DNA from: Neoechinorhynchus agilis
Taxonomy: Eukaryota > Animalia > Acanthocephala
Direction: 5' to 3'
DNA: 64,000 nucleotides
Assembly (NCBI GenBank): GCA_051530055.1
Contig: CM121341.1
Location: 7,294,784 to 7,358,783, forward strand
Within the stretch, counting starts at the first letter, position 1, and every line of letters begins with the position of its first letter. Below the pieces are notes generated by a model. The model ran no database searches and was not told the origin of the DNA. It saw only the letters and a list, made by a program, of their open reading frames with translations. This document shows positions 9,197-60,424 of the stretch, piece by piece. Made by a program: the position numbers and the translations under genes.

Positions 9197-11060
9197 TCAA
9201 GAAGTGATCTCCTCTTCAATCTTCGGGATTTTTGCTTCAGGATCGCGGGCCTGAACTGTCGTTGACTCTTCATTGACGTTTTCGAACACATCTTCGTCTT
9301 CGCTTATTGAAGGCGACATTGACTGATTGCTGATACTGTTATGATTGGTGACCACAGCGGGTGGCTGTCCGTGGTTATTGGTTGTTCGACAGACCCGCTT
9401 TAAAGACTCATTGAAATTACAAGAGCCTGGACCACAATGGTACTCAAACCCGGCATTCTCAAAACTCACTAACAGAAACTCATTTTCATCCAGTTTGTAG
9501 GACAGTTTCACCGACGGATGTTCTGTTAATGCATTATATCACCAAATTAAGATTTCTCCAACAGGATGTAATGCTCGCTTAATTGGGCACTTTCGCCATC
9601 AACCACCATTTCGACGATCCGCGTCATTTGGTATAAACAGTCCTTACATCGCTTATCATTTCCTTCCATTAAATCGTCGTCTAAAGAAGCAGTGTTCAAA
9701 TTGGTCATGGAAATGATCTGATGCTTCCAAGAATGGTGTATATCGGCCGCCAATAGCGGACACCTGAATGCTTCCAGGATCGCAACAAAACAAAACCGAA
9801 GTTGCTCAGGAGTTTGAATGAGACCCATTCGTTGTGAACGGAGATCGCAAAGTAATGAAGTCAAATCGATCACTTCACAACTCACATATTCTGATGCAAG
9901 CTACACGTTAAAATAGAGTGTATGGATTTAATTAAAGTTCGAATAAAAGCGAAAACATACCATTTGTAGGACTATATCTACAAAGATGAACGTTCCACTA
10001 CGTCCGACTCCCGCACTGCAGTGGACTATCGGTGGGCGATATGGGTCGTTGAAGACTCCTGCCCTGCGACACTCGTGTAGAAAATGAAGAAAACACTGAG
10101 GAGTCGACGGCTCGCCAAAATCGGGCCAATCAATATAGTTGAAATGTCTAATATTTCGAGACTCGGTTCCTCGGTACATGGTCATATAACGCAAGACGAA
10201 GTAGTCGTGTTTTTCAATCGCATCAAGGGTAATGTTTATTGGAACGATCGGTGAACCGTCAACCGATCCGTCGTCCTCAGATGACCAATCATCGTTTGAT
10301 GAACAGTCCGCACACAAATCAGTCACATCAGTGGCTTACAGAAGATAATTTTCGTAAAGTAGATCGTAGAGTACACTTTTCATGGGTAAAATCTTTATTG
10401 AATTTTGTCGACACTCAAGTCTTATGCTCTATTTCGTCGACAAAAAAGCGAAGAATTCAAAGACATTATTTTTGTTAAGTGACAATATTTGGGGAAAAAA
10501 CCATGCTATTGAACGATTTCAAAAACAAATCTGTAAGACCACTGATTTACTTGATCATTTTGATTTTGCAGATTCTTAGGAAAGTATTGTGCACATTTAT
10601 TGCGACCTCGTTCAAATATCTTGTTCAGCATGATAATATCGCTAGATCCTTGCTCCCAAACCATTTGCCAGAAATGGCGTATTGTGTTATGTAAAGGACC
10701 CTGCAAGGCATCAAATCATTAACTTTTTTGTTCAAAAAGATTTTACCTGAGTAAGAATAAAATTTCTTTGCGCATTATCGTATTTGACACTGCTTGCATT
10801 TATGTACCCGGGTTTGCTTTCGAGTTGAATCCGTGTGTGATCATAGGGAAGGATATCTCGATATCGATTTAATAGACGATTATCGGGTTTTTTTGCTTCA
10901 TTCTTCGACAATCCACTGGTTTGTAGGTTACATGCGCCAGAGAGCCACTAGTAGAGAGAGAAGTTTATGAAACTGTTTGTAAGTTTTAACCGACTTGGAA
11001 ATACAACGACCAAGCCTTCTCGGTCTCTAAACTGAGGTATTGATCCAATATGTGAGCCAT
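9197..11060 (-). CDS. PTPN1/PTPN2: Non-receptor protein tyrosine phosphatase, PTP1B/TC-PTP-like, multi-exon
   Basis: MAHILDQY...WSLYFQ|WLSG...[13 protein letters not shown]...YINAS...TQ|GPL...FWQMVWEQ...KCAQYFP...WPDFG...[10 protein letters not shown]...[18 protein letters not shown] introns include 10701-10746 and 9901-9960. The 3' exon structure is less certain. Confidence 0.9.
9529..9575 (-). other. Candidate non-canonical AG...AT hairpin intron (47 nt) in the PTP gene
   Basis: AGCATTACATC...GATATAATGCAT inverted ends; removal joins two phase-1 frames. A 68-nt GT-AG alternative exists. Confidence 0.45.
10322..10551 (-). other. Candidate non-canonical AG...AC intron (230 nt) with ~22-bp terminal inverted repeats in the PTP gene
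   Basis: 5' end AGTAAATCAGTGGTCTTACAGA vs reverse complement of the 3' end AGTCACATCAGTGGCTTACAGA. Removal is in frame (phase 2) and bypasses stop codons. Confidence 0.65.
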
Positions 11061-11699
11061 CGTTGTCCGGTGATTACGCTAAATCCATCTAGAAACAATT
11101 TTAGAGAATCTATCGACTCCTTCGTCTATGCCCACGAAGAGTGGACAGCTTAAATAGAGAAATTCGTCGTTGGCGACATACTGCGTTGGTTGTCTCGAAA
11201 CCTTCTCTCTCTCCCTCTTTCAATGCATCGACGGCGTCATTACTGCTGCCACACGGGCGAAACTGAAGATTTTGAAAGTAATACCGATCAGAATGTATGG
11301 CGAAATAGGAGATATTTCGAAAGTGAGGAAACCTCGTCTTTTTAATCATTAAAAAAAAGGTTTTTGGTTATGGTTCTTTTCGATGTTTTGCCCACCAACA
11401 AGGTCCGGGGACCGTGTGCCCATTAATAAAACCCTGCACTATAACAATAACTTACAATAAAATGATTTTTAACCGGGCGAGTATATTCAATGGATTTTCT
11501 CTTTATATAAAGTTCTAAATGAATTTAATACTTCACAAAACTTTAAACGCGTCTTCTCTCTTTTTCGTTGTTGGAGATCCACGCTATAAGAAACTAACTG
11601 AAATGTCACCAAGAAAAAGTTATTCGGGATGACAAAGTTTAAAAAAAAGATGGTTCTTGAGTTTACCAAAGAGATAACCAGTTGAACTTGAACAACTCA

Positions 11700-13134: not shown

Positions 13135-14310
13135 TGTGAATAAAAGTGGTATCTGAAGGAAATCTTTTTTTACCAGGCCAGAATGCAACAGCTTAAAAGT
13201 GTATGAACAACAAACTTTTTTGAGGTTATGCTTCAAAAATACGGCAATTCTCAAATTTTTAAAAGTGAATAAAAGATGTATTTAATAGAAAGCAAAAATT
13301 TGACCGATCAAAATGAACTTTTTTTGAGATTCTGCTTTAAAAAACTAAGGCATTTTTCAAATTTTTAAAAGTGAATAAAAGATGTATTTAATCAAAAGAA
13401 AAAATATGACCCATCAGAATAAACTTTTTTGAGATTCGCTTTAAAAAATACTACGGCAATTCTTAAATTTTTAAAAGTGAATAAAAGGTATATTTAATGG
13501 GGAAATTTTTTGACCCATCAGAATAAACTTTTTTGAGATTCGCTTTAAAAAATACTACGGCAATTCTTAAATTTTTAAAAGTGAATAAAAGGTATATTTA
13601 AAGGAGAAATTTTTTGACCCATCAGAATAAACTTTTTTGAGATTCCGCTTTAAAAAATACTACGGCAATTCTTAAATTTTTAAAAGTGAATAAAAGATGT
13701 ATTTAATCAAAAGAAAAAATATGACCGATCAAAATGAACTTTTTGAGATTCTGCTTTAAAAAACTAAGGCATTTTTCAAATTTTTAAAAGTGAATAAAAG
13801 GTATATTTAATCAAAAGAAAAAATATGACCCATCAGAATAAACTTTTTTGAGATTCCGCTTTAAAAAACTAAGGCATTTTTCAAATTTTTAAAAGTGAAT
13901 AAAAGGTATATTTAAAGGAAAAAATTTTGACCGATCAAAATGAACTTTTTTGAGATTCCGCTTTAAAAAATACTACGGCAATTCTTAAATTTTTAAAAGT
14001 GATTAAAAGGTATATTTAAAGGAAAAAATTTTTGACCGACCAGAATAAACTTTTTTTGACCGACCAGAATAAACTTTTTTTGAGATTCCGCTTTAAAAAA
14101 CTAAGGCAATTCTTAAATTTGTAAAAGTGAATAAAAGGTATATTTAAAGGAGAAAAATTTTGTCCGATCAGAATGAACTTTTTTGAGATTGCGCTTTAGA
14201 AACCTACGACGGCAATTCTTAAATTTTTAAAAGTGAATAAAAGGTATATTTAAAGGAGAAAAATTTTGACCGACCAGAATAAACTTTTTTTTGCGATTTT
14301 GCTTTAAAAA
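13135..14310. repeat. Degenerate AT-rich tandem repeat, ~105-bp unit, about 11 copies
   Basis: AAAAGTGAATAAAAG recurs at 104-106 bp spacing; one 128-bp unit carries an internal duplication. Confidence 0.93.
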
Positions 14311-14883
14311 AGATCCCACTTTTGAGCACTCCACTTAAATGTTCAATTGATAAAACATCCCAAACCACATAAAAAATTATTCGTGAATTCTTTGAAAGTG
14401 GACTTTTCACGTTTAGAATCGACCGAAAGCTCATTAAGTAACTAATTCCAGGAATTCGCTCAACTCACGAACATCCCAGAGAGGGGGAGCCTCGCATTCT
14501 CGGGACTAGCGAACACTTTCAAAGACGCACTTTCATTAATATTACGTTTGTGTAGGCGTCGTAGGCTTTGTTTTCATCACCCACGCGAGTGGGAGGCGTC
14601 ATTGACGAGAACAACTGCACCGGAGGCAAAATTGAGCGAGAGACAAAAGCAAACTGAACGTCAAGGGGCGGTTTGGTTAAATCCGAATTTTAAAGGTCCG
14701 AATATCTTTTTTAATAGAATGTTTGAAGATTGAACTGTTCATATTGGCAAAGCCAAATTCATAATTTAATTTCTTTTATCCTCCAAAAACAACCTTTACT
14801 AGAATCTCGCGTGAGAAATAAAGATTTATTCCCTTTCACAATATTTCATTAAAAAGGGAATCAATAAACTAATCTCCAATATC

Positions 14884-16357: not shown

Positions 16358-18660
16358 ATGTCAGACGATGACTACCTAATGCTGCTTAGGCCGTTTGGAT
16401 CGGATCCATTGTCTAACTTTGCAGTTCATGCAAGTTTCGTGTGTTCAAAACTATTAACCACTAAAGTAATTTTTAGGGCAAGCAGGGCATAAAGGTTGTG
16501 AGAGTCATGGACGACATACTACGAAGCTCGGTCATTCAACTGAAAGGAAACACATCTTCGTGAGTTCACCGTTCACTTATAATATTTCAATATTGCGTAA
16601 TTTCTAAGTGGTTTTATTGTGGCACCGAAACCGCCACGTAAAACGCTGGCTGTCAGTCACCCAGTGCTTAATCTATTCCTGAGTTCGGACCAAGACTACT
16701 TTTCATTGGATTTGGGAATCACGGATAGGCATGATGACCTATTTTGTGTAAAACTGAGTACTTTCTCAAAAAAACTCAGCGTCAGTCATTCACATTGTCG
16801 AATTCCTCTTAAATTGACTGAAGGGTGGAACTACTTGACTATCGACATGAAGTACCACTGCAAAAGACTGTTCAATAAAGAATTTTCTAAATTCCAATCA
16901 ATAAAGGTTTGTTTTGTTTATAAAAACGTTTGGTTGCCAGTCATTTAGTTTTCTAGATATTCCCGAATTGCAAATTGAGAAAAATTTTCTTTAGCAAAGA
17001 AGTTCTCAATGAAGTTGAGCTTCCTCATGAATACGGAATGCAAATTACAGCGAAGAGAGTTTACCATTCTTGCTTTCCGTCATCACATCAAAAAATATTG
17101 AACAGTCCAACAATGAGTCCAATACAATCTTCTACGGGATTAACATTCATGGCAGGGATCAATCAAAATGCAATTACGCCATCGAGAATTGTTGTCAACG
17201 TAGAAAAAGATAAACCTAAAGCATTGAAGTTAAATAATTTTCATCCTCTTTTACCGAAACCTGCAGTGCAGAAGGAGCAAGAACAACGTCAGAGTACATG
17301 GATTAGGCCGTTTCGAAAATGCGAGAACTTAAATGTTGATCAAGTACGTGAGGCAATCAATAAACAAATGAAAATCATCGAGCGGACCACTGCTAAATTA
17401 CATAACCATAAGCTAAAAAATTTAGATGAGAAGACCAGCGCAACAATCAGAAGTTCTGTGCATGATCACGAGGAGCCAGATCCTTTTTTGCCTTTGAATT
17501 TAAACCATGCAAGAGGATACGATAAACGTTCGCAAAATAATCGACGGGAATCAAAGCATTGTCAAGTGAAAATGTATAAAAATGAGACCACTGATTCGGA
17601 CCAGGCCTCAGCGATCGAATGGTCCACCGTGGATAAATTACTTGAAAGATATGAGCATATTAACCCAACGAATCCGGTTGATAAAGAACCCAATTCTTTA
17701 CAAGGATCAAACAAATCACCAAAATCGTGCATGTTGAGCGACTCGGTTGTTTTCGGTATAGAAGAGAACGGTGAAGAGAAAGAGCGTAAATTCAGTGATT
17801 CGACTTTCGACGGAAGATTGATGAACAATTTGAGCGATATGAAAGGATACGATGAAGAAGAGATATCGTCAGACTGCTCAAACAGTGGTTCATTTTTTCG
17901 AGAGGGATTCGTTGGCAACTCTGAGTGCAATAGAACAAATTCGTATATTCCGTCGGATGACACTTTAAATAAACATAGTCAGAGACCGAAAAAGTACATA
18001 ATAGCAATGGATAATCAGGTTGAACAATCTGGAGATTGTGAGAAAGAGGAGGGGGATGTTGGCCCAAAATTGTCGAATAGTTTGTGGGATCAATACTACG
18101 TAAATAAACCAAAGTCAATGTCGGTGGAGTCTGTTGGAGTTCAAGGGCAAGAGAAATCAAGAGAAAACTCGGAGCATAGCTACCAAGATATAGGTTTATG
18201 CTTATCGGAAAAATATAACCCGGACTTCGAAGTACAAGAAGACAATTTAAGTTCAATCGGTTTAATGATTAGTGGAAAATTCGATGAGGACATAAATGCC
18301 ATTACAGTATCCATTAGTGAAACATCATTAAATCACGAAAATGCGATTTATAGCAATGGAAATTTTCTGAATGGAGTATCCAATCATAATAATAATATTG
18401 GTCCATATAGGCGAGAAATGATATCAAACAGAATTATGGACGACCAGAAAGTAATTGAAATTCAAGATCAAAAGTATTTTCTTGGTTCAGATGGGTCAAT
18501 CGATGAGTATTCTGAAACTCGCAGTCGAAATTCCACCATGGGTTTAAAAAAGAACAACGAAGCAGGACGTAAACTTGGCAGGGATCCATATGCCGAAATT
18601 TCTTCGTTGTCTAAAAAAGGATCAAATCGACGGGATCACATTATAAACGAAAAATTATAA
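16358..18660 (+). CDS. CFAP20DC: CFAP20-domain protein with long low-complexity C-terminal extension (CFAP20DC/C3orf67-like)
   Basis: Spliced N-terminus ...RKTLAVSHPVLNL...YFSLDLGITD...IPLKLTEGWNYLTIDM...SIK|IFPNCKLRKIFFSKEVLNEVELPHEY matches the CFAP20/BUG22 domain; three GT-AG introns. Confidence 0.7.
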
Positions 18661-19189: not shown

Positions 19190-20841
19190 TTCTTTCTTTT
19201 TTGGCAGTTATGCCACCCTAAGGATTTAAATTCACTAATTTATTGCTGATATTTCGACGAAATATCGAGGAAATAAATTAGTGAATCAAAATCTTCAGGA
19301 TGGCGAAACTACCAAAAAAGAAAGTATCTTTTCCCCCGAAGAAAATAACGAGACATACGAAATATTGTGAACGGACTTCTTTACAAACAAAAACCAAAAT
19401 AAAGTAAACCCTTTAGTTTGCTTCCTCTATAATCCCAAACGCTTTTCTCTCGATGATTAAACTTGCTTATGGCGGAAAAATTAAAGGAATTTATAAAGTT
19501 CGATATTTCGGCACACAATCTTGTACTCCTTTATCAATATTTAAAAGATTTCCTTTAATGTCCGGGATTATTGTCTTTGAAAAAAAAGAGACTTTCTTTT
19601 TTAGCAGTTATGCCACCCTAAGGATTTAAATTCACTAATTTATTGCTGATATTTCGACGAAATATCGAGGAAATAAATTAGTGAATCAAAATCTTCAGGA
19701 TGGCGAAACTACCAAAAAAGAAAGTATCTTTTCCCCCGAAGATAATAACGAGACATACGAAATATTGTGAATGGACTTCTTTACAAACAAAAACCAAAAT
19801 AAAGTAAACCCTTTAGTTTGCTTCCTCTATAATCCCAAACGATTTTCTCTCGATGATTAAACTTGCTTATGGCGGAAAAATTAAAGGAATTTATAAAGTT
19901 CGATATTTCGGCACACAATCTTGTACTCCTTTATCAATATTTAAAAGATTTCCCTTAATGTCCGGGATTATTGTCTGTGAAAAAAAAGATATTTTCTTTT
20001 TTGGCAGCTATGCCACCCTAAGGATTTAAATTCACTAATTTATTGCTGATATTTCGACGAAATATCGAGGAAATAAATTAGTGAATCAAAATCTTCAGGA
20101 TGGCGAAACTACCAAAAAAGAAAGTATCTTTTCCCCCGAAGATAATAACGAGACATACGAAATATTGTGAACGGACTTCTTTACAAACAAAAACCAAAAT
20201 AAAGTAAACCCTTTAGTTTGCTTCCTCTATAATCCCAAACGATTTTCTCTCGATGATTAAACTTGCTTATGGCGGAAAAATTAAAGGAATTTATAAAGTT
20301 CGATATTTCGGCACACAATCTTGTACTCCTTTATCAATATTTAAAAGATTTCCTTTAATGTCCGGGATTATTGTCTGTGAAAAAAAAATATTTTCTTTTT
20401 TGGCAGCTATGCCACCCTAAGGATTTAAATTCACTAATTTATTGCTGATATTTCGACGAAATATCGAGGAAATAAATTAGTGAATCAAAATCTTCAGGAT
20501 GGCGAAACTACCAAAAAAGAAAGTATCTTTTTCCCCCGAAGATAATAACGAGACATACGAAATATTGTGAACGGACTTCTTTACAAACAAAAACCAAAAT
20601 AAAGTAAACCCTTTAGTTTGCTTCCTCTATAATCCCAAACGATTTTCTCTCGATGATTAAACTTGCTTATGGCGGAAAAATTAAAGGAATTTATAAAGTT
20701 CGATATTTCGGCACACAATCTTGTACTCCTTTATCAATATTTAAAAGATTTCCTTTAATGTCCGGGATTATTGTCTTTGAAAAAAAAGAGACTTTCTTTT
20801 TTGGCAGTTATGCCACCCTAAGGATTTAAATTCACTAATTT
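19190..20841. repeat. Tandem array, 400-bp unit x4 plus a partial unit; each unit contains a 133-bp palindrome
   Basis: TGCCACCCTA at 19211, 19611, 20011, 20410 and 20811; the palindrome at 19192-19324 has ~53-bp arms. Confidence 0.95.
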
Positions 20842-20915
20842 ATTTCCCCTATATTTTGCCGATTCGTCATCATTATTGGACGAAATATCGGGGAACGAAA
20901 TTAATGAATTTAAAT
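20824..20915. mobile_element. MITE-like hairpin element, ATTTAAATTCACT(A/G)ATTTATT family
   Basis: Inverted ends ATTTAAATTCACTAATTT / AAATTAATGAATTTAAAT; the same arm sequence occurs in the 400-bp units and at 23974-24097. Confidence 0.6.
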
Positions 20916-21052: not shown

Positions 21053-23588
21053 ATGGCGGATTTTTCGTGTGTTTTAAAGGATAAACGTCGACCTATCGAG
21101 TTTCGATTGAAATTAGCTCTTATAATATGGTCTGGTCATTGTGACAAGTCAGAGAATCCAACGATGTGCTATAAAGTACGTAAAGATCGATTAATGTTAT
21201 TGGATTGGTTGGTGGGTATTTTGTTTGGTAGGGATGAATATTCGCTCGAAGTAACGAGGAACCTATGGCGATCATTTTCGATATTTGTTAAGAACAAATC
21301 GATCGCAATCCAGGACAATTCTTCGTTGATCAGTCGATTTTTTTGTTGTCTCTCAAAACTGATCCACGATTTAAGCTGCTCTTAAAGCGAATTCAAATGT
21401 GGAAGCGTTGGTTAAGTGACCCTGAAGTCGGTACTCTTGTTCACGAATCTTTGAACCTTCTTCCCTTTGTTAAATCTCGTGTGGAAGGTTTCGGGAAAAG
21501 TAGTGAAGCGGACGATAAATGGGTCAAATTGGTCATGAATGCGCGACAAGTCAAACGAATGTCAACCGAAACTTTAATCTCTTTTTTGATAAACAAAAAT
21601 GCGTTCGTTGCAGATCGATCATCAGATTTTATCGATATTCTCTCACGTGTTTTCCGAGCTGATCTCAAGTCCTGTTTTGCGGCCTGTATTGGATTATTAG
21701 ACAAAGTTGAACGAGGTGAAGAATGTAATAAGTTTCAGGTGGACCAAGTCACAAGTATTGCCCTTCAAAATATTCCATTGAACACAAATGAACATCCTTA
21801 CATGTCTGAAATTAAGAATTTCGTTGAAAAATGCACTAAGGCGTCTTTGGCGAAGACGCAATCGTTTGCTCGCATTATTCAATGTCATCTTAATTTTGAT
21901 GATTTTGAAACTGAGAACGTAAAAATTAAGAATGTTCGTGGCCTTTGTAGCCTGGAAGATATTGAGGAATATATTTTAAGTAAAGAAGATCTAACACAAG
22001 ACGACGTCGAGTATCTGTCCAGACTTGAAGTATCTAAAGATTTGAAAGTATCGCTCAAACTTTTAAACCGGCTAGCAAGCGTAAAGACGAAAAAAAATTT
22101 AATTGCCTACAAATCTTTATATAGACGTTGTCGTCTTAAGTATCGACACGATATAGACCAAATGAACTTTATTGAACAGTTGATGATTTGTCCAGACGAT
22201 TTACTCGAGCAAACCGCCGAATGCATCCGCATTTTTTCAAAGAATGAGAGGCGCCACGCGATCCAAATGTGCACCAATGAGAAACTAAAATCTCTTTTAC
22301 TGGCCATTGAAATCCAAGGTGGCCAATACCTTGACGAGTTTATTCGATGTTGCGAAAAATGCTCGCTTGATTGGAAAGCGTTTGTTCTTTCAAAAGTTAC
22401 AGAAATTGACGAAAACGAGCTTTTAATAGGTTATATCCGAAATATTGCAAATGAAGTAGCCAAAAAACAGGTTATCGTTGGTAGCCAATATGATTTTTTA
22501 AAATTGTGTGTAGCCCGTGGATATATGGACGAAAACGACGAATCAAAAAATGAAATTATCGATGTGTTTAAGGCTCAAGGAACATTAATGTTCGACAATC
22601 GACTGAAAAAATATTCGTTAAAGCAGTGAATCTTGCAAAAACTACCGAATCCCTATTATTTAATCAAGTTCTTAATTTTTTGTTGTAGTCTTTTTCCTTT
22701 ACGCGTGAAGTTGTTCTAAAGTATAATTTAGATTTTTTCTCCAAGTGTCGAGATGAACATTCCACTTTGGGAATGAAGATATTTTTGAAAATTGAATTGT
22801 TCATGTTTGTGGCGTATTAAAATTAAAGGAATTTATTGATTCCGATTGGTTTCGAAGGCACAATCTTGTACGCCTTTATCAAGACTGTTTGTAGGTTTTT
22901 ACAACGTAGGCCGAAATATCGGACTTCATAAATTCCTTCAATTTTTATCCGTAAAATTTTAAACTATTGCTGCTCCTTTAATTTCATGCTTAGCAAATTT
23001 CCTTTAGCTTCGAAAAACACACACACGTACAATTCCCTCCAGTCTTTAGTGAGGTTCACTGCAGCAGAGAATTCAACTGATGAAACAATAAATGCAAGAA
23101 ATGTGTTTCTTGCACTAGCGAACAATCAATCTCGGTTGGCTTTAGAGCTATTTGCTGTACTTCAGCCACAGATTCGTCCAAAAAGGGTTACTGACATAAT
23201 TCACACGTATATTCGCTCACAGCACGATAAAGCCAATCCGATTCCAATAATCGAATGCTCTCGTATACTTATCGAACGCGAGCCATCGATCGTTTGTCGT
23301 CTTACCTACGTTCTAACTTCATCTATAACTAGCGAAAACATTTTTGTTACTCAAATTACTTGTATATTTATTCGGTGGATCGTAGAACACTCTTCTTCCG
23401 ACGGTGCACTTCTTCCACAATTTAAGAATTGTTTGAAACATATGCTTCCATTTTGTATAAGGAAACTGCTTTTGTTTTCAGTCAATCAAATGTCCAACAA
23501 ATATCAACAGGTTCTCAAAGATTGTTGCCCTCAAGTTGATCGCCTAAAGGTTCTGAGAGCTCCGCAACGAAAAATAAAAAGACGGTGA
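21053..23588 (+). CDS. URB2: URB2-like ribosome biogenesis protein, 3 exons
   Basis: The N-terminal LKDKRRPIEFRLKLALIIWSGH...LLDWLVG...RNLWRSF resembles the URB2 N-terminus, and the C-terminal exon resembles the Urb2 domain. GT-AG introns at 21287-21333 and 22617-22993 restore the frame. Confidence 0.6.
22815..22951. mobile_element. MITE-like element in URB2 intron
   Basis: AATTAAAGGAATTTAT ... ATAAATTCCTTCAATT inverted ends (15/16). The arm and the internal CACAATCTTGTAC.CCTTTATCAA are also present in the 400-bp satellite unit. Confidence 0.65.
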
Positions 23589-23930: not shown

Positions 23931-23973
23931 CCACCTTATTCTTTTTTTTCATGTCTTTGATTATTGAACTCGG

Positions 23974-24097
23974 ATTTAAATTCACTGATTTATTTTCGAT
24001 ATTTCACGTCGGATAATTCCGAAAATTTCACAAACTTTAAGAAAAATTCATAATTATCCGGCGTAAAATATCGGAAATAAATCAGTGAAATTTAAAT
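23974..24097. mobile_element. MITE-like hairpin element, same family as 20824-20915
   Basis: ATTTAAATTCACTGATTTATT ... AATAAATCAGTGAAATTTAAAT inverted ends with nested internal hairpins. Confidence 0.65.
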
Positions 24098-36065: not shown

Positions 36066-38235
36066 TTATGACACGGATGGGGGGAAGATAGCGCTAGAAT
36101 CTGTCAAGAGGCATATCATGCTCTTTATTGGCAATCCACGCCCAAAGGACGCTAAGGATACTATTGCAGAAACCATATATGCCAAAAATCGATGAATCAA
36201 AAAAGAGATGAAAATACTTCGCTGTAAACCCCTAAATCTCACTTCCTTGTCGATATAAATCCTTCTGCCTCTGAAGATTACATACAACCTGACGATTTTA
36301 CTTGGTTTAAAGTACGAAAAGCTGGAGATATTTCTGCAGAAAAAGGAAACATCTTGCTGCTCTAGGGCGAATCGTAGAACGAAACCTTTTGCAACTGCAT
36401 GGCCACGAAGCCACGAATATCCGCCGGAAACTACAAATCCGACGACTTTCTGTTCTCCATCGTCCAATAGGTCCTTTCGGAGAATCTTGCACCTTTGCTC
36501 GGTGTTCTGACCAGTTTCCTTACTTGAGCTTATTTTCGTTGCAGCTCTCGGTAATGGAACACATTCAGTAGTAGAAGCAACTATCAAACAATTATCCTTT
36601 GGTCTGCCTCCTTTTGCAAATTCGAGGAACAAAGGACATAGATCCATGGAATCCGAAGAAGCTTTTTCTCCTAGTGTCAGTGTCCATTCGGACTGTAGTC
36701 TGCGCCAATCACATTTGAAAGGGCACTTAATCGAATACGTATTGATTTTGATTCTCCTATTAGGGAGGAGAATCCAAATCTTTAAAGAAGTTTGTTCGCT
36801 TTGACGGAGGTCGTTTTAAGTATTCTGTTCGTTTCTTTGCCTCTTCCTCGTTTTCAAAACTGTTGCATGCGGGCGTCAATGGATATTCTTTAGGATATAG
36901 TAGACAACCCATTTCGAGTGATAAATGTTCAAGCTCAACTTGTCCAAGAGCTCGGCAACCTGATTGCACCAGTGCATGCCAAAAAGCTCTTCCAGCAACT
37001 CGTGAACCGACGATTATGTCATAATGCGATCCCAAACGTGGATATGGGTTTAGACAACAAGGATCGAATACAGATCGATATATAAGACATAAAGGGACAG
37101 TAGCAGAGGCAAATGAAACTGTTTTGTTTGGGCGTGAAACTTTTAAATCCTTCGGAGGGCACATTAGTTGGCATATTTCTCTGGAAACGTTATTTTGAAT
37201 TGCGTTTGAACCGAACAATTCCGAGACTTTGGCCCACATAATCTCGCCATCGAATGTCATTGGAGGATTTATGTTTAAAATTGATTGAAGGATTTTCGGT
37301 GCAAGTGGACCATATATTCTGTGTGGGCGATGGTGGTCTCCTAGCCCTCATTAAAGAATTACGCCAGAATTTTAGAAACCCCTTTTTCTATCCGCTAAAA
37401 CAGACCACCAACGAGCCACTCTAAATCTGCATAAATCCTGTACGCTTCTACACATCTCATTGTTCTCTTTAAAGTCTTTAAAAGCGTTACCTGCCGGATG
37501 GGTGAATATCCAAACTGTGCATTTGCTTGGCCAAATACAAAGAGCTGGCTGTGACTTCGATGCCATCCAGACACATTTCTCTCGTCTCCCGTCCATTGAC
37601 AAAGAACCGAATCCCTTGATTGATGGTTCCAACACAAATACTTTTTGGCGGACCTCATCGCTTGTTTGTCCGGTTACTTCGATACATTTCCAATACGACA
37701 AATCCTTTTAAGAAAAGCTCTAACACCTCAAAAATCATGATTTCACTCACATGAACGCATGCCAATGATGCTAGTGATCGTACGATTTTCCTATAGCATT
37801 TATCGAATCTCTTTATTGGAACACGGACGCCCCATCGGTCTTCCATTCTGAATCGCTTAGCGTGCCAAATGTGAGTTGATAGCCAATTGTGGCGTGCACT
37901 TCGCATAATCAAATCAATCGATCGACAAAATAGCCGTCCCCGTCTTCGCCTCTGCTTTCTCCTCACTGAGCGCGAGATCGTCTTAAGCTTTAAAACCTAT
38001 AATCTCCAAACAATGATGCTGCGTAGTACACTAAGCAATCAAATACCTTTTCCGCGAAGGTCCGGACTCTTTTTGGTAGACGACGGGGATTGTATGAAGC
38101 CGCTTTTCGTCTCATATGACGAGGAACCAATTGATTTGCAGTACAGGACCGATCATGACCACTAAGGTATTGCCGAAGTGACCTTACGTGTTTTAATCGA
38201 TTGGAAAGATATCGGCTTATGTTGATTTCTAAAGG
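36066..38235 (-). CDS. POP1: RNase P/MRP subunit POP1, multi-exon; start not resolved
   Basis: QLVPRHMRRKAASYNPRRLP, WLSTHIWHAKRF, H|DLSYW, DLCRF|RIYGPL, FWHALV, RPPSKRTNFFK|YSIKCPF and GFVVSGGYSWLRGHAVAKG. Confidence 0.9.
36739..36781 (-). other. Non-canonical AG...AC hairpin intron (43 nt) in POP1
   Basis: AGATTTGGATTCTCCT-CCCTAAT-AGGAGAATCAAAATC-AATAC with a 14/15-bp stem; removal restores RPPSKRTNFFKYSIKCPF. Confidence 0.7.
37321..37422 (-). other. Non-canonical AG...AC intron (102 nt) with inverted ends in POP1
   Basis: AGAGTGGCTCGTTGGTGGTCT...AGACCACCATCGCCCACAC contains an in-frame stop; removal restores DLCRFRIYGPL. Confidence 0.7.
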
Positions 38236-40433: not shown

Positions 40434-43400
40434 TCACTCCTCATCGAGTTTCTTCACTTCCGCTTCCCCGGATAACATTTCAATCTTTCTTTTTGCATCA
40501 CAGAGACTTGAATAATACTGCTGGCACTGATTGAAATACTCATTGCTTTGCTTGTACATGAGTTCGGAATCAGCCATGAGTTTATTAAGTTTTTCATTAT
40601 ACTCATCTTCGAAAGGACACTTGATTATGGCCGTAATGATGGAATCATTTACTTCAAACTCATGAACAACTCGTCTACTCAGAGTTGGCAGAAGCTGTGA
40701 GTGAATATTTAAAACGTGATCGTCAATGTAAAGATCGTGAATTGGTAATTGGCAGGGTTGATGTGCGTTTGATGGTCGTTGTTGGTCGTGGTTGTACGAG
40801 CCGAGTGCTGAGATGTATTACAAGTTTAGTCTTCTGCACAAAAAAGAATTCTAATACTTAGAAAAACAAAAGTTTTGACAAAGTGTACCGATTGCTCATA
40901 TTACAAAGCAAAATTATGAAGGTCTCATCGTTTCCCCGCCGCTTCTAGGGATGGAAAACGCAGAATAATTAAGTGGTACGAGTAGACTAAACTTGTCTGA
41001 TGATGGACAATGAACAGAGGAATCCAGGATGTGCAGAATACGTTTTCCCACATCATTGCTACAACGACCTATGAGCATAGAAACAATTGATTCGTTCGAT
41101 TTCAGGAAAGTCTGTTCCATAGGATCAAAGAATGTAAGTAGACAGCAAATGAACATGAGAAACGAAGAGAGCAAAGGTTCGTTATTTTCACCGGACAAAA
41201 TGTTCACTATCTGCTCAGCCAATTCAACTGTCTTTTCACCGAGGTCTTTTAATATACGAGAGTTTCCTGTCAACAGGCCGATAAGAGACGAAGAAGCGCC
41301 TATTCGTGCCTGAACTTCCAAGGATGAATTGAGTGCTACTTGAAACATCGATTCAACTATACCACATAAATCCTCGTCATCTGTTCGATTGAAACAATGC
41401 ATCAAAAGAAGGCACAAGCAATTAACACTTAAGCCAACATCGGCGTTATGTCTTTCTTTTTGAACATTTAGACGGTCAACGAGTTGAGTAAAAAGGGGAG
41501 GAGATTCATCAGTTTTTTCCATGAGCAGATGATCACGGATTCGTCTTTTAATTTTGGAATTCGATTTACATAACGAGACAAGGCATTTGTACGCATTTAA
41601 CTTTAAAGGAATGGGCTGGTGTGGTTCTATAAATGAAAAGAGACGGGAATCAAATCGATCGAATATTTGCGTTTGAACAAGTGAGCATTTGTATCCTATT
41701 TGCGACAAACAGAAGAGGCATTCTGATCGAAATGAAGTTCCATTGGTTAATTGATTAGCAGTGAGTGACAGAGTGTAAGCGAGATGTAAAGAACTATTCC
41801 CTCAACTAAAACGCATACACACTGAAATGAATTGCCTTCAAATGTAATCCAATCAATGAGTTTATCGACGATACCAGAATCCAATAGAGCCAATTGGCAA
41901 TTGTTCATTATGGATTTAACGTTTCCGAGACAATACCCACACACAAGTGCATTCAATACCCTTACACAACCAATGATGTTACGGACTGATTGATCGTTTA
42001 GCGGTTCCGGTGGTGTGGACGAAACACCGTCGGCATCGGTGAAATAGGAAACGGACGGGAACAAATCAGATATTGAGTGGGCGCATTTGTACTAGCGAAT
42101 CTCGTATTCTACTCCTAAAAGGAGCCAAATCGTTTCGAAACGAAAATATCGATCATTAATAAAAGAAAAAGGTTTGTTTCAACCGCGTATAGAGCTCGAA
42201 TAAAACTATAATAGAAACGACAACATGTGGTTGAGAAATCAGTCGACAATCTACAAACTAAAACGGATCGAATCGAAATATTGTTGATTTGTGCGTCAAA
42301 ATTTTAAAATAAATTCACTTAAGATCCAAATGGAGCAGATGAACTTCGACGATCTCAATAAAAAATACTCGCTATTTTGTCTTTTCGTAACAATTAGGAT
42401 CGATTGCATTTTTAGCGGAAGATTGCTAAGAAAATACGCCTTCATACTGTCAGCTAAAGTGAATTTCGACAATTTAAATGAATCCATTTAATTTAAAATT
42501 TTGGTTCCGGCTCGATCAGTCTATGCTGGATTTGGATGAATCAATCGAGAGCAAGAAAGGAATTTTGAAAGAAACGAAATCGTGATCGGTTTTGACAACC
42601 ACGAGCAATGAGGTCCGCGATTGCCTTTTCAGTGCAGAACTTAACGAGTGTAAACGACAAAGCTTGTGTTGGAGAGACTTTGCTTATTGCTCGAGGATCT
42701 GTACATTGAATCTAATAAGAATCCGAGCTTAACGGACTCAAGGGGTACGCGTTGGCCATCGCAATACAGCGAAGAAACATGCAACCGGTGCGAGCAAAAT
42801 AATCCCCGCTGATAAATCCTTTCAATTTTCCTTAGAAACGAATTAATGTGATTGAAGAATCCGACAATGAAAAGACGAGAATTGCTAGATTAGATTCCAG
42901 AAATATTTGCCTAATAGCGTTGTCGACGGTCTTTAGAGTAATTTCCTGTGTACTAGATATCAACAGGTTACCGATAACAACAAGACAATCTTGAGCCACA
43001 ACTCCACCTGCAACTAGGCCGCCTTCGTTACAAATCGTATTGATTAGATACTCGAAACCGCTTTGAAAAGCAACTAAACGGCAAATGTGACTCCGGTTCG
43101 ATCCTTGATTTCGGGTAAGTAGGCCAAGTAAGAAGAGTGCTTCGTTGCGAATAGCTTCCCTTACGTCTTCTAACAGACTTATCAGGGCACTTATAGCAAG
43201 TGGATTATTAGTCAACGTTGCAATCGATGTTTGAGGAGAATTCTGGACTAGACAACAAAGAAGTTGCGTACATTTGAAACGGACGTTAAATTCAGTATTC
43301 TCAAGGCCACAAACCAATGCGTCAACGTTATCCTGTTTAAACGAGAACATTTCGACAAACTGAGTAAGAATATCATGTTTCATCTTCTTTTCTGGATCGG

Positions 43401-47300: not shown

Positions 47301-48565
47301 AGAGAGAAAAATCCACCGGGATGATAGAGCTAAAAGCTTCGTTCGGGTCACCTAAAAAAGGTTTCTATTGTTTTGCATGGCTCGGGTATCCGGACAGATC
47401 GCTATTCCCGTGGTTCGGGCGAGCTTAAAAAATGCTCTAAACGATTTAACCATCAAGAGAAAAAATCCACCGGGATGATAGAGTTAAAAGCCTCGTTCGG
47501 GTCACCTAAAAATGGTTTCCATTGTTTTGTATGGCTCGGGTATCCGGGGAGATCGCTATTCCCGAGGTTCGGACGAGCTTAAAAATGCTCTAAACGATTT
47601 AACCATCACGAAAAAAATCCACCGGGATGATAGAGCTAAAAGCTTCGTTCGGGTCACCTAAAAAAGGTTTCTATTGTTTTGCATGGCTCGGGTATCCGGA
47701 CAGATCGCTATTCCCGTGGTTCGGACGAGCTTAAAAAATGCTCTAAACGATTTAACCATCACGAAAAAATCCTTAGGGATGATAGAGTTAAAAGCCTCGT
47801 TCGGGTCACTTAAAAAAGGTTTCTATTGTTTTGTATGGCTCGGGTATCCGGATTATCGTTATTCCCGAGTTCCGGACGAGTTTAAAAAATGCTCTAAACT
47901 ATTTAATCATCAAGTCAAATAAAGGTTTTTTGCGAAAAGAATTTGTTTTTAGGCTCGGGCTGCCGTGAATGAAGCGTCCGATGAGTACATTCATTCTCAA
48001 TCCGCCTGGGAAGCGATGGCCAACACTGCTTATCTTGCACAAGCACTTTGTGGTCATCAGGACAAATGTTCACAAGAATCGAATGAATTCTGTACATCCC
48101 GAGAATCTTGTGATTGCTTGACTGCTTTACAATCAAAAGTAATTGTTTCAACTTCTTTTTTCTGGGAGATTTATTCCGTTTCATTTTCAGCTAAAATGCC
48201 TAGAGACTAACAGGATGTCGATTGAGCATCATCACAAGCAGAAATCGATTGAGTATCAGTTGACCGTTCAAAAAGCGAAGTATTTCGAAAGGAAATTCTC
48301 TCGTTCAATCAAACGAGCTAAGTGTTTTGCACAATCCATTTTTAGAGCCTAACTTCAATGCGCGCTCTTTTAGATCATATTTCGAGCTGAGACAAAGATT
48401 TAACACGGATTTAAAGGTTTCATCGTACTGGCCTCCACGTCTTCCTAAAAAAATTTGAAGATGATGCAAAATGACTTCAATAAAGTACAATTGAGTTTGT
48501 CTACTCACAAGCAAGTGTATCGAAGTGCACTATGTAAACTAGAGGAGATTTCGGATAAGGTTTGA
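44400..48565 (+). CDS. SH3BP5: SH3BP5 (Sab)-like protein, multi-exon, with a 3.2-kb satellite-filled intron
   Basis: MSADVVK|TELEKLNGASRLINQLENDIS|KIRSSY...LDQIVHKIGKSV...AAQK|ARAAVNEAS...FERKFSRSIKRAK|SYFELR...|...YRSALCKLEEISD parallels SH3BP5; all introns GT-AG; large intron 44715-47952. Confidence 0.85.
44870..47920. repeat. Tandem satellite, ~152-bp unit, about 20 copies, inside SH3BP5 intron
   Basis: GGGATGATAGAG.TAAAAGC...GGCTCGGGTATCCGG recurs about every 152 bp, with sequence variants. Confidence 0.97.
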
Positions 48566-49605: not shown

Positions 49606-51360
49606 AAACTGGCTGAGTTTGTATATTCCGTAGTTGTGCCGAGATGGTCAAGTGGACAAATGCTTTTGATTCAACTTTGTTGGGTCAACTTTTTCAAATC
49701 CGTTACCGCCAAAGGGAGAACAATAAAAAGGGGACGAAATATCTCGTTGAAGGCAGGAAACTCACTGATGAGTCCCGTCTCCTCGGGAGGTATCTGAAGA
49801 TCCGGAGGAATGTACAAACTTTTAACCGTGCATTAGAAACTTTGTGGTTATATCACTTCTCTGATGTAATTGATTTGGATTTATGCCTAAAAAAATAAGC
49901 CCGGTATAAGGGACAAACTAAATTTAATGATGATATAAAACAAACCGGTTTGCCAGTAAAAAACCTTAAAATAGAATACAGCGCTCACCCTGAGTCGAAA
50001 AACTGGCTGAGTTTGTATATTCCGTAGTTGTGTCGAGGTGGTCAAGTGGACAAATGCTTTTGATTCCAGTTTGTTGGGTCAACTTTTTCAAATCCGTTAC
50101 CGCCAAAGGGAGAACAATAAAAAGGGGACGAAATATCTCGTTGAAGGCAGGAAACTCACTGATGAGTCCCGTCTCCTCGGGAGGTATCTAAAGATCCGGA
50201 GGAATGTACAAACTTTTAACCGTGCATTAGAAACTTTGTGGTTATATCACTTCTCTGATGTAATTGATTTGGATTTATGCCTAAAAAAATAAGCCCGGTA
50301 TAAGGGACAAACTAAATTTAATGATGATATAAAACAAACCGGTTTGCCAGTAAAAAACCTTAAAATAGAATACAGCGCTCACCCTGAGTCGAAAAACTGG
50401 CTGAGTTTGTATATTCCGTAGTTGTGTCGAGGTGGTCAAGTGGACAAATGCTCTTGATTCAAGTTTGTTGGGTCGACTTTTCAAATCCGTTACCGCCAAA
50501 GGGAGAACAATAAAAAGGGGACGAAATATCTCGTTGAAGGCAGGAAACTCACTGATGAGTCCCGTCTCCTCGGGAGGTATCTAAAGATCCGGAGGAATGT
50601 ACAAACTTTTAACCGTGCATTAGAAACTTTGTGGTTATATCACTTCTCTGATGTAATTGATTTGGATTTATGCCTAAAAAAATAAGCCCGGTATAAGGGA
50701 CAAACTAAATTTAATGATGATATAAAACAAACCGGTTTGCCAGTAAAAAACCTTAAAATAGAATACAGCGCTCACCCTGAGTCGAAAAACTGGCTGAGTT
50801 TGTATATTCCGTAGTTGTGTCGAGGTGGTCAAGTGGACAAATGCTCTTGATTCAAGTTTGTTGGGTCGACTTTTCAAATCCGTTACCGCCAAAGGGAGAA
50901 CAATAAAAAGGGGACGAAATATCTCGTTGAAGGCAGGAAACTCACTGATGAGTCCCGTCTCCTCGGGAGGTATCTAAAGATCCGGAGGAATGTACAAACT
51001 TTTAACCGTGCATTAGAAACTTTGTGGTTATATCACTTCTCTGATGTAATTGATTTGGATTTATGCCTAAAAAAATAAGCCCGGTATAAGGGACAAACTA
51101 AATTTAATGATGATATAAAACAAACCGGTTTGCCAGTAAAAAACCTTAAAATAGAATACAGCGCTCACCCTGAGTCGAAAAACTGGCTGAGTTTGTATAT
51201 TCCGTAGTTGTGTCGAGGTCGTCAAGTGGACAAATGCTCTTGATTCAAGTTTGTTGGGTCAACCTTTTCAAATCCGTTACCGCCAAAGGGAGAACAATAA
51301 AAAGGGGACGAAATATCTCGTTGAAGGGAGGAAACTCACTGATGAGTCCCGCCTCCTCCT
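49606..51360. repeat. Tandem array, 393-394-bp unit, about 4.5 copies
   Basis: ACTGGCTGAG at 49608, 50002, 50396, 50789 and 51182. Confidence 0.96.
49731..49803 (+). ncRNA. Candidate hammerhead-ribozyme-like motif with permuted strand order (core repeated in each 394-bp unit)
   Basis: GGGAC-GAAA-TATCTC (49731-45), GGA-AAC-TCA-CTGATGA-GTCCC (49756-76) and GAGGTA-TC-TGA-AGA-TCC (49787-803) can form stems II, III and I. The strand order is not type I, II or III. Confidence 0.3.
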
Positions 51361-57920: not shown

Positions 57921-58815
57921 ACGTTTTGGTCGACTTTTAGATCCGTTTGCTTTCTTTACAACAAAAAGAGTTCTAAAATCATTAAGTTTGGAAAATCATT
58001 GCGAACAAATGTTATTATTTTACGGTCGCTTTTGAACAAACGAGAGGGATTGCGTTAAAAACGAATATTTCGACTGATTGCACCAGTCATTTTATTAAAA
58101 TTCAAACACACGACAGTGTTCGTTTTGATCCGGGAATTCGGGATCTTCAAGCCCGCGTTCGAATTCGTCTTTAACGCGATCCTTTTCACGTGTTCATAAG
58201 CGACCGCAAAATAACAAACTCATCTAATCATTGTCAACAAAAAAAATATTTACAAATGTCCATCAAATTTAGCGATAGATCCTCATTAAAAAAAACGATG
58301 AATCTGTCACTTATTGCGTCCAATATCACAGCGTTGAAGCAAAAAACGCTATCGGAAACTATCACTGATATCACGAAAACCAGTTTTCTCACTTTTTCCT
58401 TCCATTGATGCCGCGTTAAAATGAGCCCAGATACTTACTTGAAAAACAAGAAAACCTTCGAAAATTGCTTATCTCTTTTTTGCGGCATTCCACCCCACGA
58501 ACATAGGAGTGAAACATGCGCTTCTTTGTTCTGGTTGGTGTAAGGCGTTGTGATGAAGGGTTTTGTTAGTTTAGGGCGCGCACACATCCTCCGGGTGTTT
58601 GTTAGTGTTTGGTATGTGCGTCTCTGATGAACACTCGGTTACACAGTTGACATACACGCACACTCACGATTTTGAGTTGTTGTCGTTGTTGACGTTTGGT
58701 CATTAGTTGTGTGTGTGCGTAGACACGCGTTCATTTGGTCGAGGTGGATTGTGTGAGTGTGTGCGTGCCATATGATGATGACCACCTCTCCCTTGCTCTA
58801 CACACAAGCAACACG

Positions 58816-60424
58816 TCATGCAGACATTTGAACCGTCTGCTGTTGCTGCGACCAGATCGCCGTCGATTGATCTTGGTCGTCCTCGGACGACTTTGTCTGC
58901 TCTGGCTGACCGGGTGCGCTCGTCATGCTTTGATCTACCTGAAACTCTGCGACGTAGAGAGCAGGTTCAATCGTCTTCGGAATCGGTATAATTCGGGTAG
59001 CCAATTCCCGTTCAATTGACTGTATTGTCGATCGATCCTCAAATGTAATAAGATTTATCGCGATTCCAAGATGACCAAATCTTCCTGAACGCCCAATCCT
59101 GTGTAAATACGTTTCTGCCATTTTAGGGAAATCAAAATTTATCACTACATTAACTGCCGGAATGTCAATTCCGCGGGTCAATAGATCAGAACAAACTAGG
59201 TTACGACAATGACCAGCACGGAAATCGTGAAAAACGCGATTTCGGTGCTCCTGCTTCATTTTCGCGTGGATATAAAAACACGAGAAACCAAGCTCGGTGA
59301 TCTTCTTTGCCAAAAGTTCCACCCTCTGAGTACTATTGCAAAATATAATGCTCTGATTGATCTGCAGCTTTGAAAATAGCGTATTAAGGCAGTGAACTTT
59401 TTGACGTTCTTGAACAAATGCATAATACTGGGTCACTCCCTTTAGCGTCAATTCGTCCATGAGGTTGATCTCATGAGGATTGTTCATGTATCGCCTGACA
59501 AAGTTCTCAACGGTCACGGGAAACGTCGCCGAGTACAACATTATTTGTTTTGAACGGGGAAGCTCACGAACGATGTCATCAAGCATGTTCTTGAAATCCT
59601 GACTGAGAAGCTTGTCGGCTTCGTCGAGCACTAGCATTTTACAGTGTTGCATCTTTGCACATCCTTTACGGATGAGGTCAATAATGCGACCAGGAGTTGC
59701 AATGACCAAGTGAACCTTGTTGAACAGTCGCATATGGACTAGAAGGTCTCATCTATAAGATTAGGAGCTCCTTCTCTGAGACCTCCTATTCCCTAAAGTC
59801 GTCACGAAGATTTGTGCCACCAGTGGAAACCATAACCCGTATGTCGGTATGTTTGCTAAGCTCTATACAAATTTGGCTTGTTTGTAGGGCGAGTTCCCGA
59901 GTTGGGACTACAATAAGTGCCTGGATATTGAATTCGGTTGCATCGATACGATCTAGAATTGGAATTGCGTATGCACCAGTTTTGCCAGTGCCATTTTTGG
60001 CACGGGCTAGGATATCACGGCCTGTTAGGGCCACTGGAATACTTGCTTCTTGAATTGGACTCGGTCGCTCCCATCCCTTTTCAAATACACCCATCAACAG
60101 TTCGCGGCTTAAACAATAATCTTCGAACGAATGACCATGAGTGCGGGTAACGTCTGTTGTTTTTATACGGCGGTCAACGGGAGGTCGTTTGATCGTACTT
60201 TTCCAATCGTCGCTACTTATTGATTTCGCAGACGATGATGACGGCAATGGTTGCAACTTCGATGACGGTGATGCCGGTTTCGTAACATTGGAGGACGACT
60301 CCATTTCCGGAATTGGATCTAAGACGGCGGCGCCCTGAGCAATTGGGGCTTGTAGGATTGCGGCATGTTTGTCGGAAGAGGCCGCGACCTCACTTGTGTT
60401 TGAAGTACTGTTACTCATAATCAT
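58816..60424 (-). CDS. DDX6: DEAD-box helicase DDX6/Me31B/Dhh1, two exons
   Basis: [58 protein letters not shown] and [15 protein letters not shown]; the exons are separated by a 61-nt insertion. Confidence 0.95.
59734..59794 (-). other. Non-canonical AG...AT hairpin intron (61 nt) in DDX6
   Basis: AGGGAATAGGAGGTCTCA vs the reverse-complemented end ATGGACTAGAAGGTCTCA (15/18). It contains an in-frame TAG; removal gives [12 protein letters not shown] (family consensus [12 protein letters not shown]). Confidence 0.8.

Follow-up and report, generated by a model that had tools for sequence, protein, structure and literature searches.

A 64-kb stretch of the genome of Neoechinorhynchus agilis (Acanthocephala; GCA_051530055.1, CM121341.1), referred to below as the window, raises the question of how genes for conserved proteins are expressed when short palindromic inserts break their reading frames. 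The genes concerned are homologues of DDX6, POP1 and USO1, which are otherwise intact long open reading frames (ORFs); the inserts introduce stop codons or frame shifts, and at three of the junctions homology demands their exact removal. A first-pass annotation had proposed that such insertions, in these genes and in a PTP gene (all four on the minus strand), are hairpin-ended introns with AG..AC or AG..AT ends that coexist with ordinary GT-AG introns. The analysis reported here suggests, with a probability of about 70%, that the inserts would leave the pre-mRNA as non-GT-AG introns, this being the best explanation of the genomic sequence. The host is not a tunicate: the exact product of the C-terminal ORF of DDX6 was matched on a single contig only, CM121341.1 (19.4 Mb) of this assembly, and the POP1 locus is that of the GenBank entry 'hypothetical protein ACOME3_001726 [Neoechinorhynchus agilis]'. 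The DDX6 protein is nearest to that of Pomphorhynchus laevis and to two transcriptome sequences.

BRAKER and AUGUSTUS predict canonical introns only. The N. agilis genome (46.2 Mb), sequenced by Oxford Nanopore (ONT), Illumina and Hi-C methods, was annotated with BRAKER2 (PMC12690905). Breaks in the annotation coincide with inserts in three of the roughly 15 genes of the window: DDX6 is split, POP1 truncated and USO1 fragmented. GenBank has DDX6 as two genes, one of 212 aa that ends at a TAG within the hairpin and one of 305 aa that begins directly after it, the split separating invariant residues of the first RecA domain. The POP1 model (450 aa) uses an internal 66-nt GT-AG intron, stops at the TAA of a second hairpin and lacks POP1_C, and USO1 is given as two pieces of 281 and 238 aa. 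Neighbouring genes with GT-AG introns only are annotated whole (CFAP20DC, 718 aa with three introns, and a SSXT-domain gene of 210 aa), a difference that serves as an independent hint in favour of removal of the inserts. As AUGUSTUS/BRAKER cannot model non-GT-AG introns, this fragmentation is expected whether or not the inserts are removed.

Four inserts were robust to the tests described below:

59734..59794, minus strand: DDX6 intervening sequence, 61 nt, AG..AT in the preferred register, with an in-frame TAG inside
37321..37422, minus strand: POP1 intervening sequence a (POP1a), 102 nt, with an AGA direct repeat at its flanks
36739..36781, minus strand: POP1 intervening sequence b (POP1b), 43 nt, AG..AC, nearly all of it one hairpin with TAA and TAG in the loop
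41765..41823, minus strand: USO1 intervening sequence j2 (USO1-j2), 59 nt, AG..AC in the preferred register, its ends without a homology anchor

Junctions were located by deleting any interval near each one, with the end dinucleotides left free, and scoring every stop-free product against a profile of homologues (115 for DDX6 and 32 for POP1). As a control, the ordinary POP1 intron at 37705-37750 was recovered as GT..AG at no more than 1.4 bits below the top of the scan, and an intron in an unconserved stretch stayed unplaced. From these outcomes the scan is taken to place a junction in conserved protein to about ±1-2 residues. Only the first 250 residues and two weak blocks of the USO1 profile carry information; it cannot place the USO1 junctions, and at USO1-j2 the protein is too divergent for it to be of use. 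A window-wide scan for hairpin removals that fuse ORFs, seeded with 8-bp repeats, was too noisy for use.

Deletion of the 61 nt from DDX6 gives a junction, ...NLRDDF/, that aligns without gaps to the ...NLKDDY/MRLYNKVHLVI... of its relatives; the predicted exon-exon join (minus strand) is CGTGACGACTTT/ATGCGACTGTTC. Among the 1533 stop-free intervals scanned, all 12 of the best products listed delete 55-61 nt at 59734-59794. The top products, DDF/MRL or DDY/MRL, scored 442.3-442.5 bits, and the registers TA..CA, GG..TA and TT..CC tie with AG..AT. The best GT-AG product scored 428.3 bits, about 14 worse, and destroys an invariant aspartate. In P. laevis all DDX6 introns are GT-AG and the nearest lies six codons from the position of the N. 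agilis insert; with only GT-AG introns there and none at that position, the insert is not shared with this relative.

The two POP1 inserts behaved in the same way. Deletion of the 102 nt of POP1a restores RFR/IYGPL (RFxLxGP in the family) with 278.9 bits and the predicted join (minus strand) TGCAGATTT/AGAATATATGG; owing to the flanking AGA repeat, the AG..AC, GA..CA, AG..AG, GT..GA and TA..CA registers yield one identical product. The sole in-frame GT-AG interval here is 37347-37412 (66 nt), inside the insert. It scored 268.4 bits, 10.5 worse, and as annotated leaves twelve additional residues inside the RFxLxGP motif. Deletion of the 43 nt of POP1b gives NFFK/YSIKCPFKCDW, gapless against relatives of the KLGISCPFKCEW type and again at 278.9 bits, with the predicted join (minus strand) AACTTCTTTAA/GTATTCGATTAAG; the best canonical choice was GC-AG with 272.4 bits (6.5 worse). 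The proposal that removal restores conserved motifs in DDX6 and POP1 which the canonical alternatives damage is therefore upheld, at a cost to those alternatives of 6.5-14 bits. At the other end of POP1, an ATG directly 5′ of the conserved N-terminus (38246-38248, minus strand) is followed at once by TAA, and the GenBank model starts in an upstream mini-exon (38767-38811, minus strand; MDDQDIGQSSELAQD, from 38811) joined to the acceptor CTCCTTTAG at about 38226.

At USO1-j2 the frame must shift between 41750 and 41801, and not one of the 5947 stop-free intervals has GT-AG or GC-AG ends. Exactly here lies an imperfect inverted repeat of 12-13 bp, and the hairpin AGUGUGUAUGCG/CGCUUACACUCU (41770-41823) has the best end pairing of all 5947 intervals. 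The insert starts CAGTGTG.

The ends of the inserts were then compared with 2000 random segments of the window, whose end duplexes form a background of -4.7 ± 2.8 kcal/mol, and whole folds were scored as the z of the minimum free energy (MFE) against shuffles. The end duplex of DDX6 (-24.2 kcal/mol) was matched by 0/2000 segments (P = 0), and that of POP1a (-22.1 kcal/mol), formed by the terminal helix GUGGCUCGUUGGUGGUCU/AGACCACCAUCGCCCAC, likewise by 0/2000 (P = 0); the values for POP1b and USO1-j2 were -17.8 kcal/mol (P = 0.0015) and -11.8 kcal/mol (P = 0.0185). As a whole, DDX6 folds with MFE -26.3 kcal/mol and z -3.5, leaving only 2 nt unpaired per end, POP1b with MFE -16.3 kcal/mol and z -4.8 (0/200 shuffles), and POP1a with z -2.4. 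In all four, 0-3 nt lie between the 5′ end and the helix, and 2-5 nt between the helix and the 3′ end. Such terminal helices were absent from the five GT-AG introns tested, whose end-duplex P values of 0.5-0.9 are at background level; z was -0.2 to +0.6 for the four that were folded. The ordinary introns include:

37705..37750, minus strand: GT-AG intron of POP1, 46 nt; z +0.35, end duplex at background
37982-38046, 9901-9960, 10701-10746 and 10948-10994: further GT-AG introns
within 16358-18660, plus strand: three ordinary introns of CFAP20DC
2230-2272: ordinary intron of HGH1

At least 11 ordinary GT-AG introns are present in the window, 43-65 nt in length or longer where they carry nested elements, and the coexistence of the two kinds of intron is thus borne out.

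The sense folds of DDX6, POP1a, USO1-j2 and a further candidate, USO1-j3 (four of five inserts), are 4-8 kcal/mol stabler than the antisense folds because of G-U pairs. This hints at selection on the RNA, and with such small numbers the evidence is weak; in the terminal stems alone G-U and A-C mismatches number 1 and 0, too few for use. A branch-point-like CCUAAU is found in the unpaired apical region of the DDX6 (59753-59768) and POP1b (36757-36765) hairpins, 21-30 nt from the 3′ end; so short a motif is common in AT-rich sequence.

Ends of the type AG..AC/AT are the sole end rule common to the three junctions anchored by homology (DDX6 AG..AT, POP1a AG..AC, POP1b AG..AC), and this register is also possible at USO1-j2. 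From the dinucleotide frequencies of the window the chance of such ends at all three is about 1.3e-4; a crude correction for 256 rules brings this to about 0.03. In the AG..AY register the last three bases are CAT, CAC, TAC and CAC (DDX6, POP1a, POP1b and USO1-j2) and CAT at USO1-j3, always YAY, and G is frequent at positions +2, +4 and +6. The exon triplets directly 5′ of the inserts are TTT, TTT, TAA and TTC, with no YAY/TAC duplication, and a flanking direct repeat occurs only at POP1a (AGA). U12-type introns have the consensus /ATATCCTT at the 5′ site and TCCTTAAC at the branch site. The 5′ ends of the inserts, AGGGAATA, AGAGTGGC, AGATTTGG and AGTGTGTA, do not fit this consensus of U12-type (AT-AC) introns.

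Four further candidates gave less clear results:

40813..40998, minus strand: USO1-j3, 186 nt, AG..AT, with a perfect 12-bp terminal inverted repeat (ACAAGTTTAGTC/GACTAAACTTGT); ambiguous
about 42089..42891, minus strand: USO1-j1, about 800 nt between the inverted repeats CTAGCAATTCTCG/CGAGATTCGCTAG; ambiguous
9529..9575, minus strand: PTP C-terminal candidate, 47 nt, AG..AT, with a 6-bp terminal stem; weak, in an unconserved region
10276..10550, minus strand: PTP middle intron, an ordinary GT..AG intron of 275 nt with a nested inverted-repeat element at 10328-10545

The end duplex of USO1-j3 (-18.1 kcal/mol) was reached by 0/2000 random segments and its helix lies 7 nt from the 3′ end; the frames are also joined by GT..AG at 40808-40987 and 40808-41008. 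The GenBank model of USO1 ends at 40914 and leaves out a conserved downstream exon. USO1-j1 has an end duplex of about -15 kcal/mol (P = 0.0045) and GT..AG 42092-42876 is also possible; GenBank exon 1 ends at the stop at 42832 (281 aa). For the PTP C-terminal candidate the end-duplex P was about 0.06 and z -1.5, and, judged by eye, a GT..AG interval of about 68 nt (~9523-9590) joins the frames too. The large PTP insertion was rejected as a non-canonical intron: with GT..AG 10276-10550 removed the protein aligned to PTP1B in a single stretch (233.2 bits), and the AG..AC version broke the alignment into two stretches (228.2 bits). The nested element (212-218 nt) has the ends CAGTGG...CCACTG, and without it the intron would be about 63 nt, the usual size here; the element has AT on both flanks (minus strand).

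Seven non-canonical junctions had been proposed. The outer limits of the set, 9529 and 59794, were recovered, and the proposal stands for DDX6, POP1a, POP1b and USO1-j2. USO1-j1, USO1-j3 and the PTP C-terminus, each with a GT-AG alternative, are ambiguous, and the large PTP insertion is an ordinary intron. In all, four junctions are solid, three open and one refuted, and neither PTP case survives as put forward, one being a GT-AG intron with a nested element and the other weak with a canonical alternative.

DDX6, POP1 and USO1 are essential in other organisms. As they are also otherwise intact here, the inserts must be removed, unless the public annotation is essentially right and the inserts are retained, or spliced only at internal GT-AG sites, so that the genes are split, truncated, extended by extra residues or decaying as pseudogenes in a parasite with extensive gene loss. 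The GenBank models agree with this, as does the ATG that opens the second DDX6 ORF, and only 47% of metazoan BUSCOs are complete in the assembly (PMC12690905). The models would, however, look the same if the annotation software were blind to non-GT-AG introns, the split in DDX6 falls between invariant residues of one domain, long, intact and conserved ORFs flank the inserts on both sides, no start codon is present in the parts of POP1 and USO1 that lie downstream, and the canonical products score 6.5-14 bits worse, so that this explanation is improbable. Two mechanisms acting in translation were rejected. The take-off and landing codons needed for translational bypassing agree only at POP1a (AGA/AGA) and not at DDX6, and the production of two polypeptides by re-initiation is no general answer, an ATG following the insert in DDX6 only.

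Removal from DNA has a precedent in the internal eliminated sequences (IES) of ciliates, which are TA-bounded and lie in a transcriptionally silent germline nucleus. By analogy, the inserts could be germline-restricted and excised in somatic nuclei, the assembly then representing DNA rich in germline; the mass of a whole worm can be assumed to be largely gonad and embryos. The DNA did come from pooled whole worms (PMC12690905), the inserts have terminal inverted repeats, and that in DDX6 can be written as TA-bounded (TA/GGGAAT...GTCCA/TA), but no TA boundaries are found at POP1a, POP1b or USO1-j2. Animal germlines transcribe and need these three genes, and disrupted germline copies would therefore still need repair at the RNA level. 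We know of no precise gene-internal DNA elimination in animals, and consider this explanation very unlikely. Still less credit is given to an assembly artefact or a polymorphic insertion allele. The hybrid ONT/Illumina assembly was made with MaSuRCA/Flye from about 50 pooled worms with a low HiFi yield (PMC12690905), and a separate frame problem at a T7 run (21338-21345) hints at residual indels. Unique structured inserts of 43-102 nt are nevertheless not a known error mode of the pipeline, the Illumina k-mer completeness is 96%, and one would have to suppose an artefact or a null allele in each of at least four cases, spread over three essential genes that are neighbours. As removal from DNA and artefact are both unlikely, and bypassing and re-initiation do not generalise, excision at the RNA level is the best explanation.

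Several points weigh against the reading of the inserts as non-GT-AG introns. The evidence for USO1-j2 is its reading frame and structure only, with a non-significant whole-fold z of -1.5, and the in-frame GT-AG alternative at POP1a is the very one used in GenBank. A junction-spanning query of a protein collection for transcripts of the same species matched only the GenBank POP1 model and gave no cDNA support. Four to six junctions in 64 kb make up the sample, and no second copy of any insert was found over this length. DDX6, POP1a and POP1b each have 6-9 registers that fall no more than 1.5 bits short of the best, a boundary slack of ±2-3 nt; since these score alike, homology does not fix the end dinucleotides, and of the AG..AC/AT ends originally claimed it can be said that they are available at all four robust junctions, the exact register being left free by homology.

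A route by which the inserts could have arisen and be removed can be proposed. Short palindromic DNA, of the foldback type or like miniature inverted-repeat transposable elements (MITEs) and presumably mobile in origin, may have become fixed within coding exons of essential N. agilis genes. Each insert would fold on itself in the transcript, the terminal helix bringing the exon ends together, and the points of cleavage and ligation would lie just beyond the helix, by 0-3 nt at its 5′ side and by 2-5 nt at its 3′ side (7 nt for USO1-j3), most consistently as AG at the 5′ end and A(C/U) at the 3′ end.

Non-canonical introns in Fritillaria borealis were reportedly described by Henriet et al. in 2019. 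In this larvacean tunicate 95% of introns are non-canonical, with AG/AC and AG/AT ends (PMC13326754, PMC11282704); the last intron triplet is YAY, and the exon ends, just ahead of the intron, in a YAY/TAC triplet that forms a target-site duplication (Soo et al. 2026, PMC13326754). Introns of this type belong to repeated MITE families and are removed by the U2-type spliceosome, in a setting of duplicated U2AF, altered U1/U6 m6A and no U12 system. The N. agilis inserts are likewise short introns of an animal without GT-AG, have compatible AG 5′ ends and AC/AT 3′ ends at all robust junctions, YAY end triplets, frequent G at +2/+4/+6 and terminal inverted repeats, and coexist with GT-AG introns. 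As in Fritillaria, a position, that in DDX6 (the gene covered by the comparison), is not shared with a relative, P. laevis. They differ in phylum and in frequency, as only a minority of the introns in the window (about 4-7 of about 20) are non-canonical, compared with 95% in F. borealis. Unlike in Fritillaria, the exonic YAY/TAC duplication is absent, the helix closes near both ends in each robust case, and no repeated element families were seen in the 64-kb window.

The nonconventional introns of euglenids provide the other close comparison. Their ends follow a genetically defined pattern of a 3-nt spacer, CAG...CTG and a 5-6-nt spacer before an exon that starts with a purine (PMC12501133). 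Euglenid introns of this kind need base-pairing between the regions beside their ends and leave as circular RNA, without the conventional spliceosome. In both systems GT-AG is missing, the splice sites are drawn together by inverted repeats adjacent to the ends, the boundaries can slide along short direct repeats, the sequences are mutually unrelated, and conventional introns occur in the same genes. The likeness extends to the presence, as such, of base-pairing near both ends (-11.8 to -24.2 kcal/mol compared with a background of -4.7 kcal/mol). A helix-guided, non-spliceosomal excision, in which an endonuclease and ligase or a back-splicing-like reaction reads the helix and frees a circle, is therefore entertained as a tentative rival, on the matter of machinery only. 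It would account for the terminal helix in all robust inserts and in no ordinary intron, for inserts that all differ in sequence, for the favouring of the sense strand by G-U pairs, and for a sliding boundary such as that at POP1a (AGA), as in Euglena (PMC12501133). The euglenid code, N3-CDG...CHG-N5-6/R (PMC12501133), on the other hand, does not describe DDX6 (AGG-GAA), POP1a (AGA-GTG) or POP1b (AGA-TTT), and USO1-j2 alone can be forced into it. The distance of the helix from the ends varies, from 0 to 3 nt on the 5′ side and from 2 to 7 nt on the 3′ side, the AG..AY/YAY ends recur as in the spliceosomal system of Fritillaria, and DDX6 and POP1b have branch-point-like CUAAU motifs in their apical loops. 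The two systems also differ in host, euglenids being protists and N. agilis an animal. Because of the recurring ends, the G at +2/+4/+6 and these apical-loop motifs, we lean slightly, by analogy, towards a relaxed U2-type spliceosome like that of Fritillaria, assisted by the helix; Euglena-like excision is nearly as likely.

Three other systems share single features. In Amoebophrya, a dinoflagellate, introners are described in PMC7789003, as that work is relayed in PMC11282704, as multi-copy families with conserved repeat motifs, U1 snRNA being apparently absent. As far as that account goes, non-canonical ends and terminal inverted repeats are common to both, and POP1a has a 3-nt direct repeat (AGA); the inserts here are unlike the introners in being unique sequences with one clear direct repeat. 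In the mirtrons of flies, nematodes and mammals, as in these inserts, a whole intron of about 45-100 nt is one hairpin with its base at the splice sites. Mirtrons have normal GT-AG sites, unlike the inserts. Ciliate IES also are short unique inserts with inverted-repeat ends in coding sequence that need exact removal, and they are removed from DNA. TA bounds fail at three of the four junctions here, being possible at DDX6 only (the TA..CA register, then TA); the bases after POP1a are CA, and POP1b and USO1-j2 lack a TA pair.

The window is AT-rich (GC 30-43%), with compact genes separated by seven tandem-repeat arrays. Long palindromes are common, and its non-satellite DNA contains 16 perfect inverted repeats (11 bp or longer, within 300 nt) compared with 6.6 ± 2.3 expected, an enrichment of about 2.4-fold. 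The free palindromes include:

22813-22951, 23975-24095 and 58012-58217: free palindromes of 120-210 nt, intergenic or intronic, unrelated in sequence to the exonic inserts

Within the 64-kb window no similarity was found among the inserts, or between them and satellites or free palindromes, beyond chance matches of 11-17 nt. This bears out the observation that the hairpins share geometry and not sequence, and leaves the idea of the free palindromes as candidate donors unsupported. As no repeated insert copies were seen, a transposon origin is unproven. The ends of the PTP nested element and of USO1-j2 look Tc1/Tc3-like, which may point to where the palindromes came from. A scan of the window for tRNA genes and Rfam families gave no match and no snRNA gene.

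The seven tandem arrays, with periods of 104-400 bp, occupy about a quarter of the window:

4558-9073
13212-14311
19192-20844
39136-40061
44873-47914
49606-51358
61179-64000

At least two have palindromic units (148 and 400 bp), and a look-up of a satellite ORF for other loci in the genome found nothing. The HGH1 homologue (2005-3380; DUF384, E = 4e-13) is interrupted at 2591-2695 (minus strand) by a near-perfect 105-nt hairpin with MFE -53.5 kcal/mol. Exact AT..AT removal preserves the frame; the arms include GTAAGC, and a canonical GT 2681..AG 2519 intron (163 nt) is possible. The coding segment beside the hairpin appears duplicated (TMFFPLIAVD and LFLFYPLIGNTID), and an exact-product look-up of the 243-aa HGH1 ORF returned no record. 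At 21290-21385 (plus strand) an unknown gene has two long ORFs in different frames that overlap around the T7 run (21338-21345), perhaps through a residual ONT homopolymer indel or else a short non-canonical intron, for which there is an AG..AC candidate of 56 nt; GenBank has the second ORF only (390 aa). A 200-aa ORF at 22986-23588 has no GenBank annotation, and 24806-25765 and 28410-28931 (minus strand) are adjacent paralogues with 33% identity over 137 aa and no Pfam match.

What would be new is the occurrence of this kind of intron in a new phylum, undescribed in the genome paper (PMC12690905), where the word 'intron' is absent from the text; a literature search found nothing connecting non-canonical introns with rotifers or acanthocephalans. 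The first-pass annotation had left open whether the host was a second lineage with this splicing, and its identity as an acanthocephalan, with a relative, P. laevis, whose DDX6 has GT-AG introns only, favours that option. On somewhat better than even odds, a second animal system of non-GT-AG splicing has arisen independently in acanthocephalans, or at least in N. agilis, and in it unique palindromic inserts in exons are removed exactly with the help of a terminal RNA helix.

Public data bearing on the question are available for N. agilis in 74 RNA-seq libraries (PRJNA1223661) and a Trinity transcriptome (Zenodo 10.5281/zenodo.17199078). If the frequency in the window holds across the genome, a sizeable fraction of genes would be affected. 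Annotation restricted to canonical introns would then be fragmented, and the gene counts, the low BUSCO completeness (47% in this assembly) and the massive gene loss ascribed to acanthocephalans may be partly artefacts. To our knowledge, large-scale departure from GT-AG in animals is known from fritillariid tunicates only, and a second, unrelated lineage would show that escape from the GT-AG rule is repeatable. With most of its introns still canonical, N. agilis would be a natural intermediate, in which it could be asked which changes to the spliceosome come first and whether RNA structure can replace splice-site sequence.

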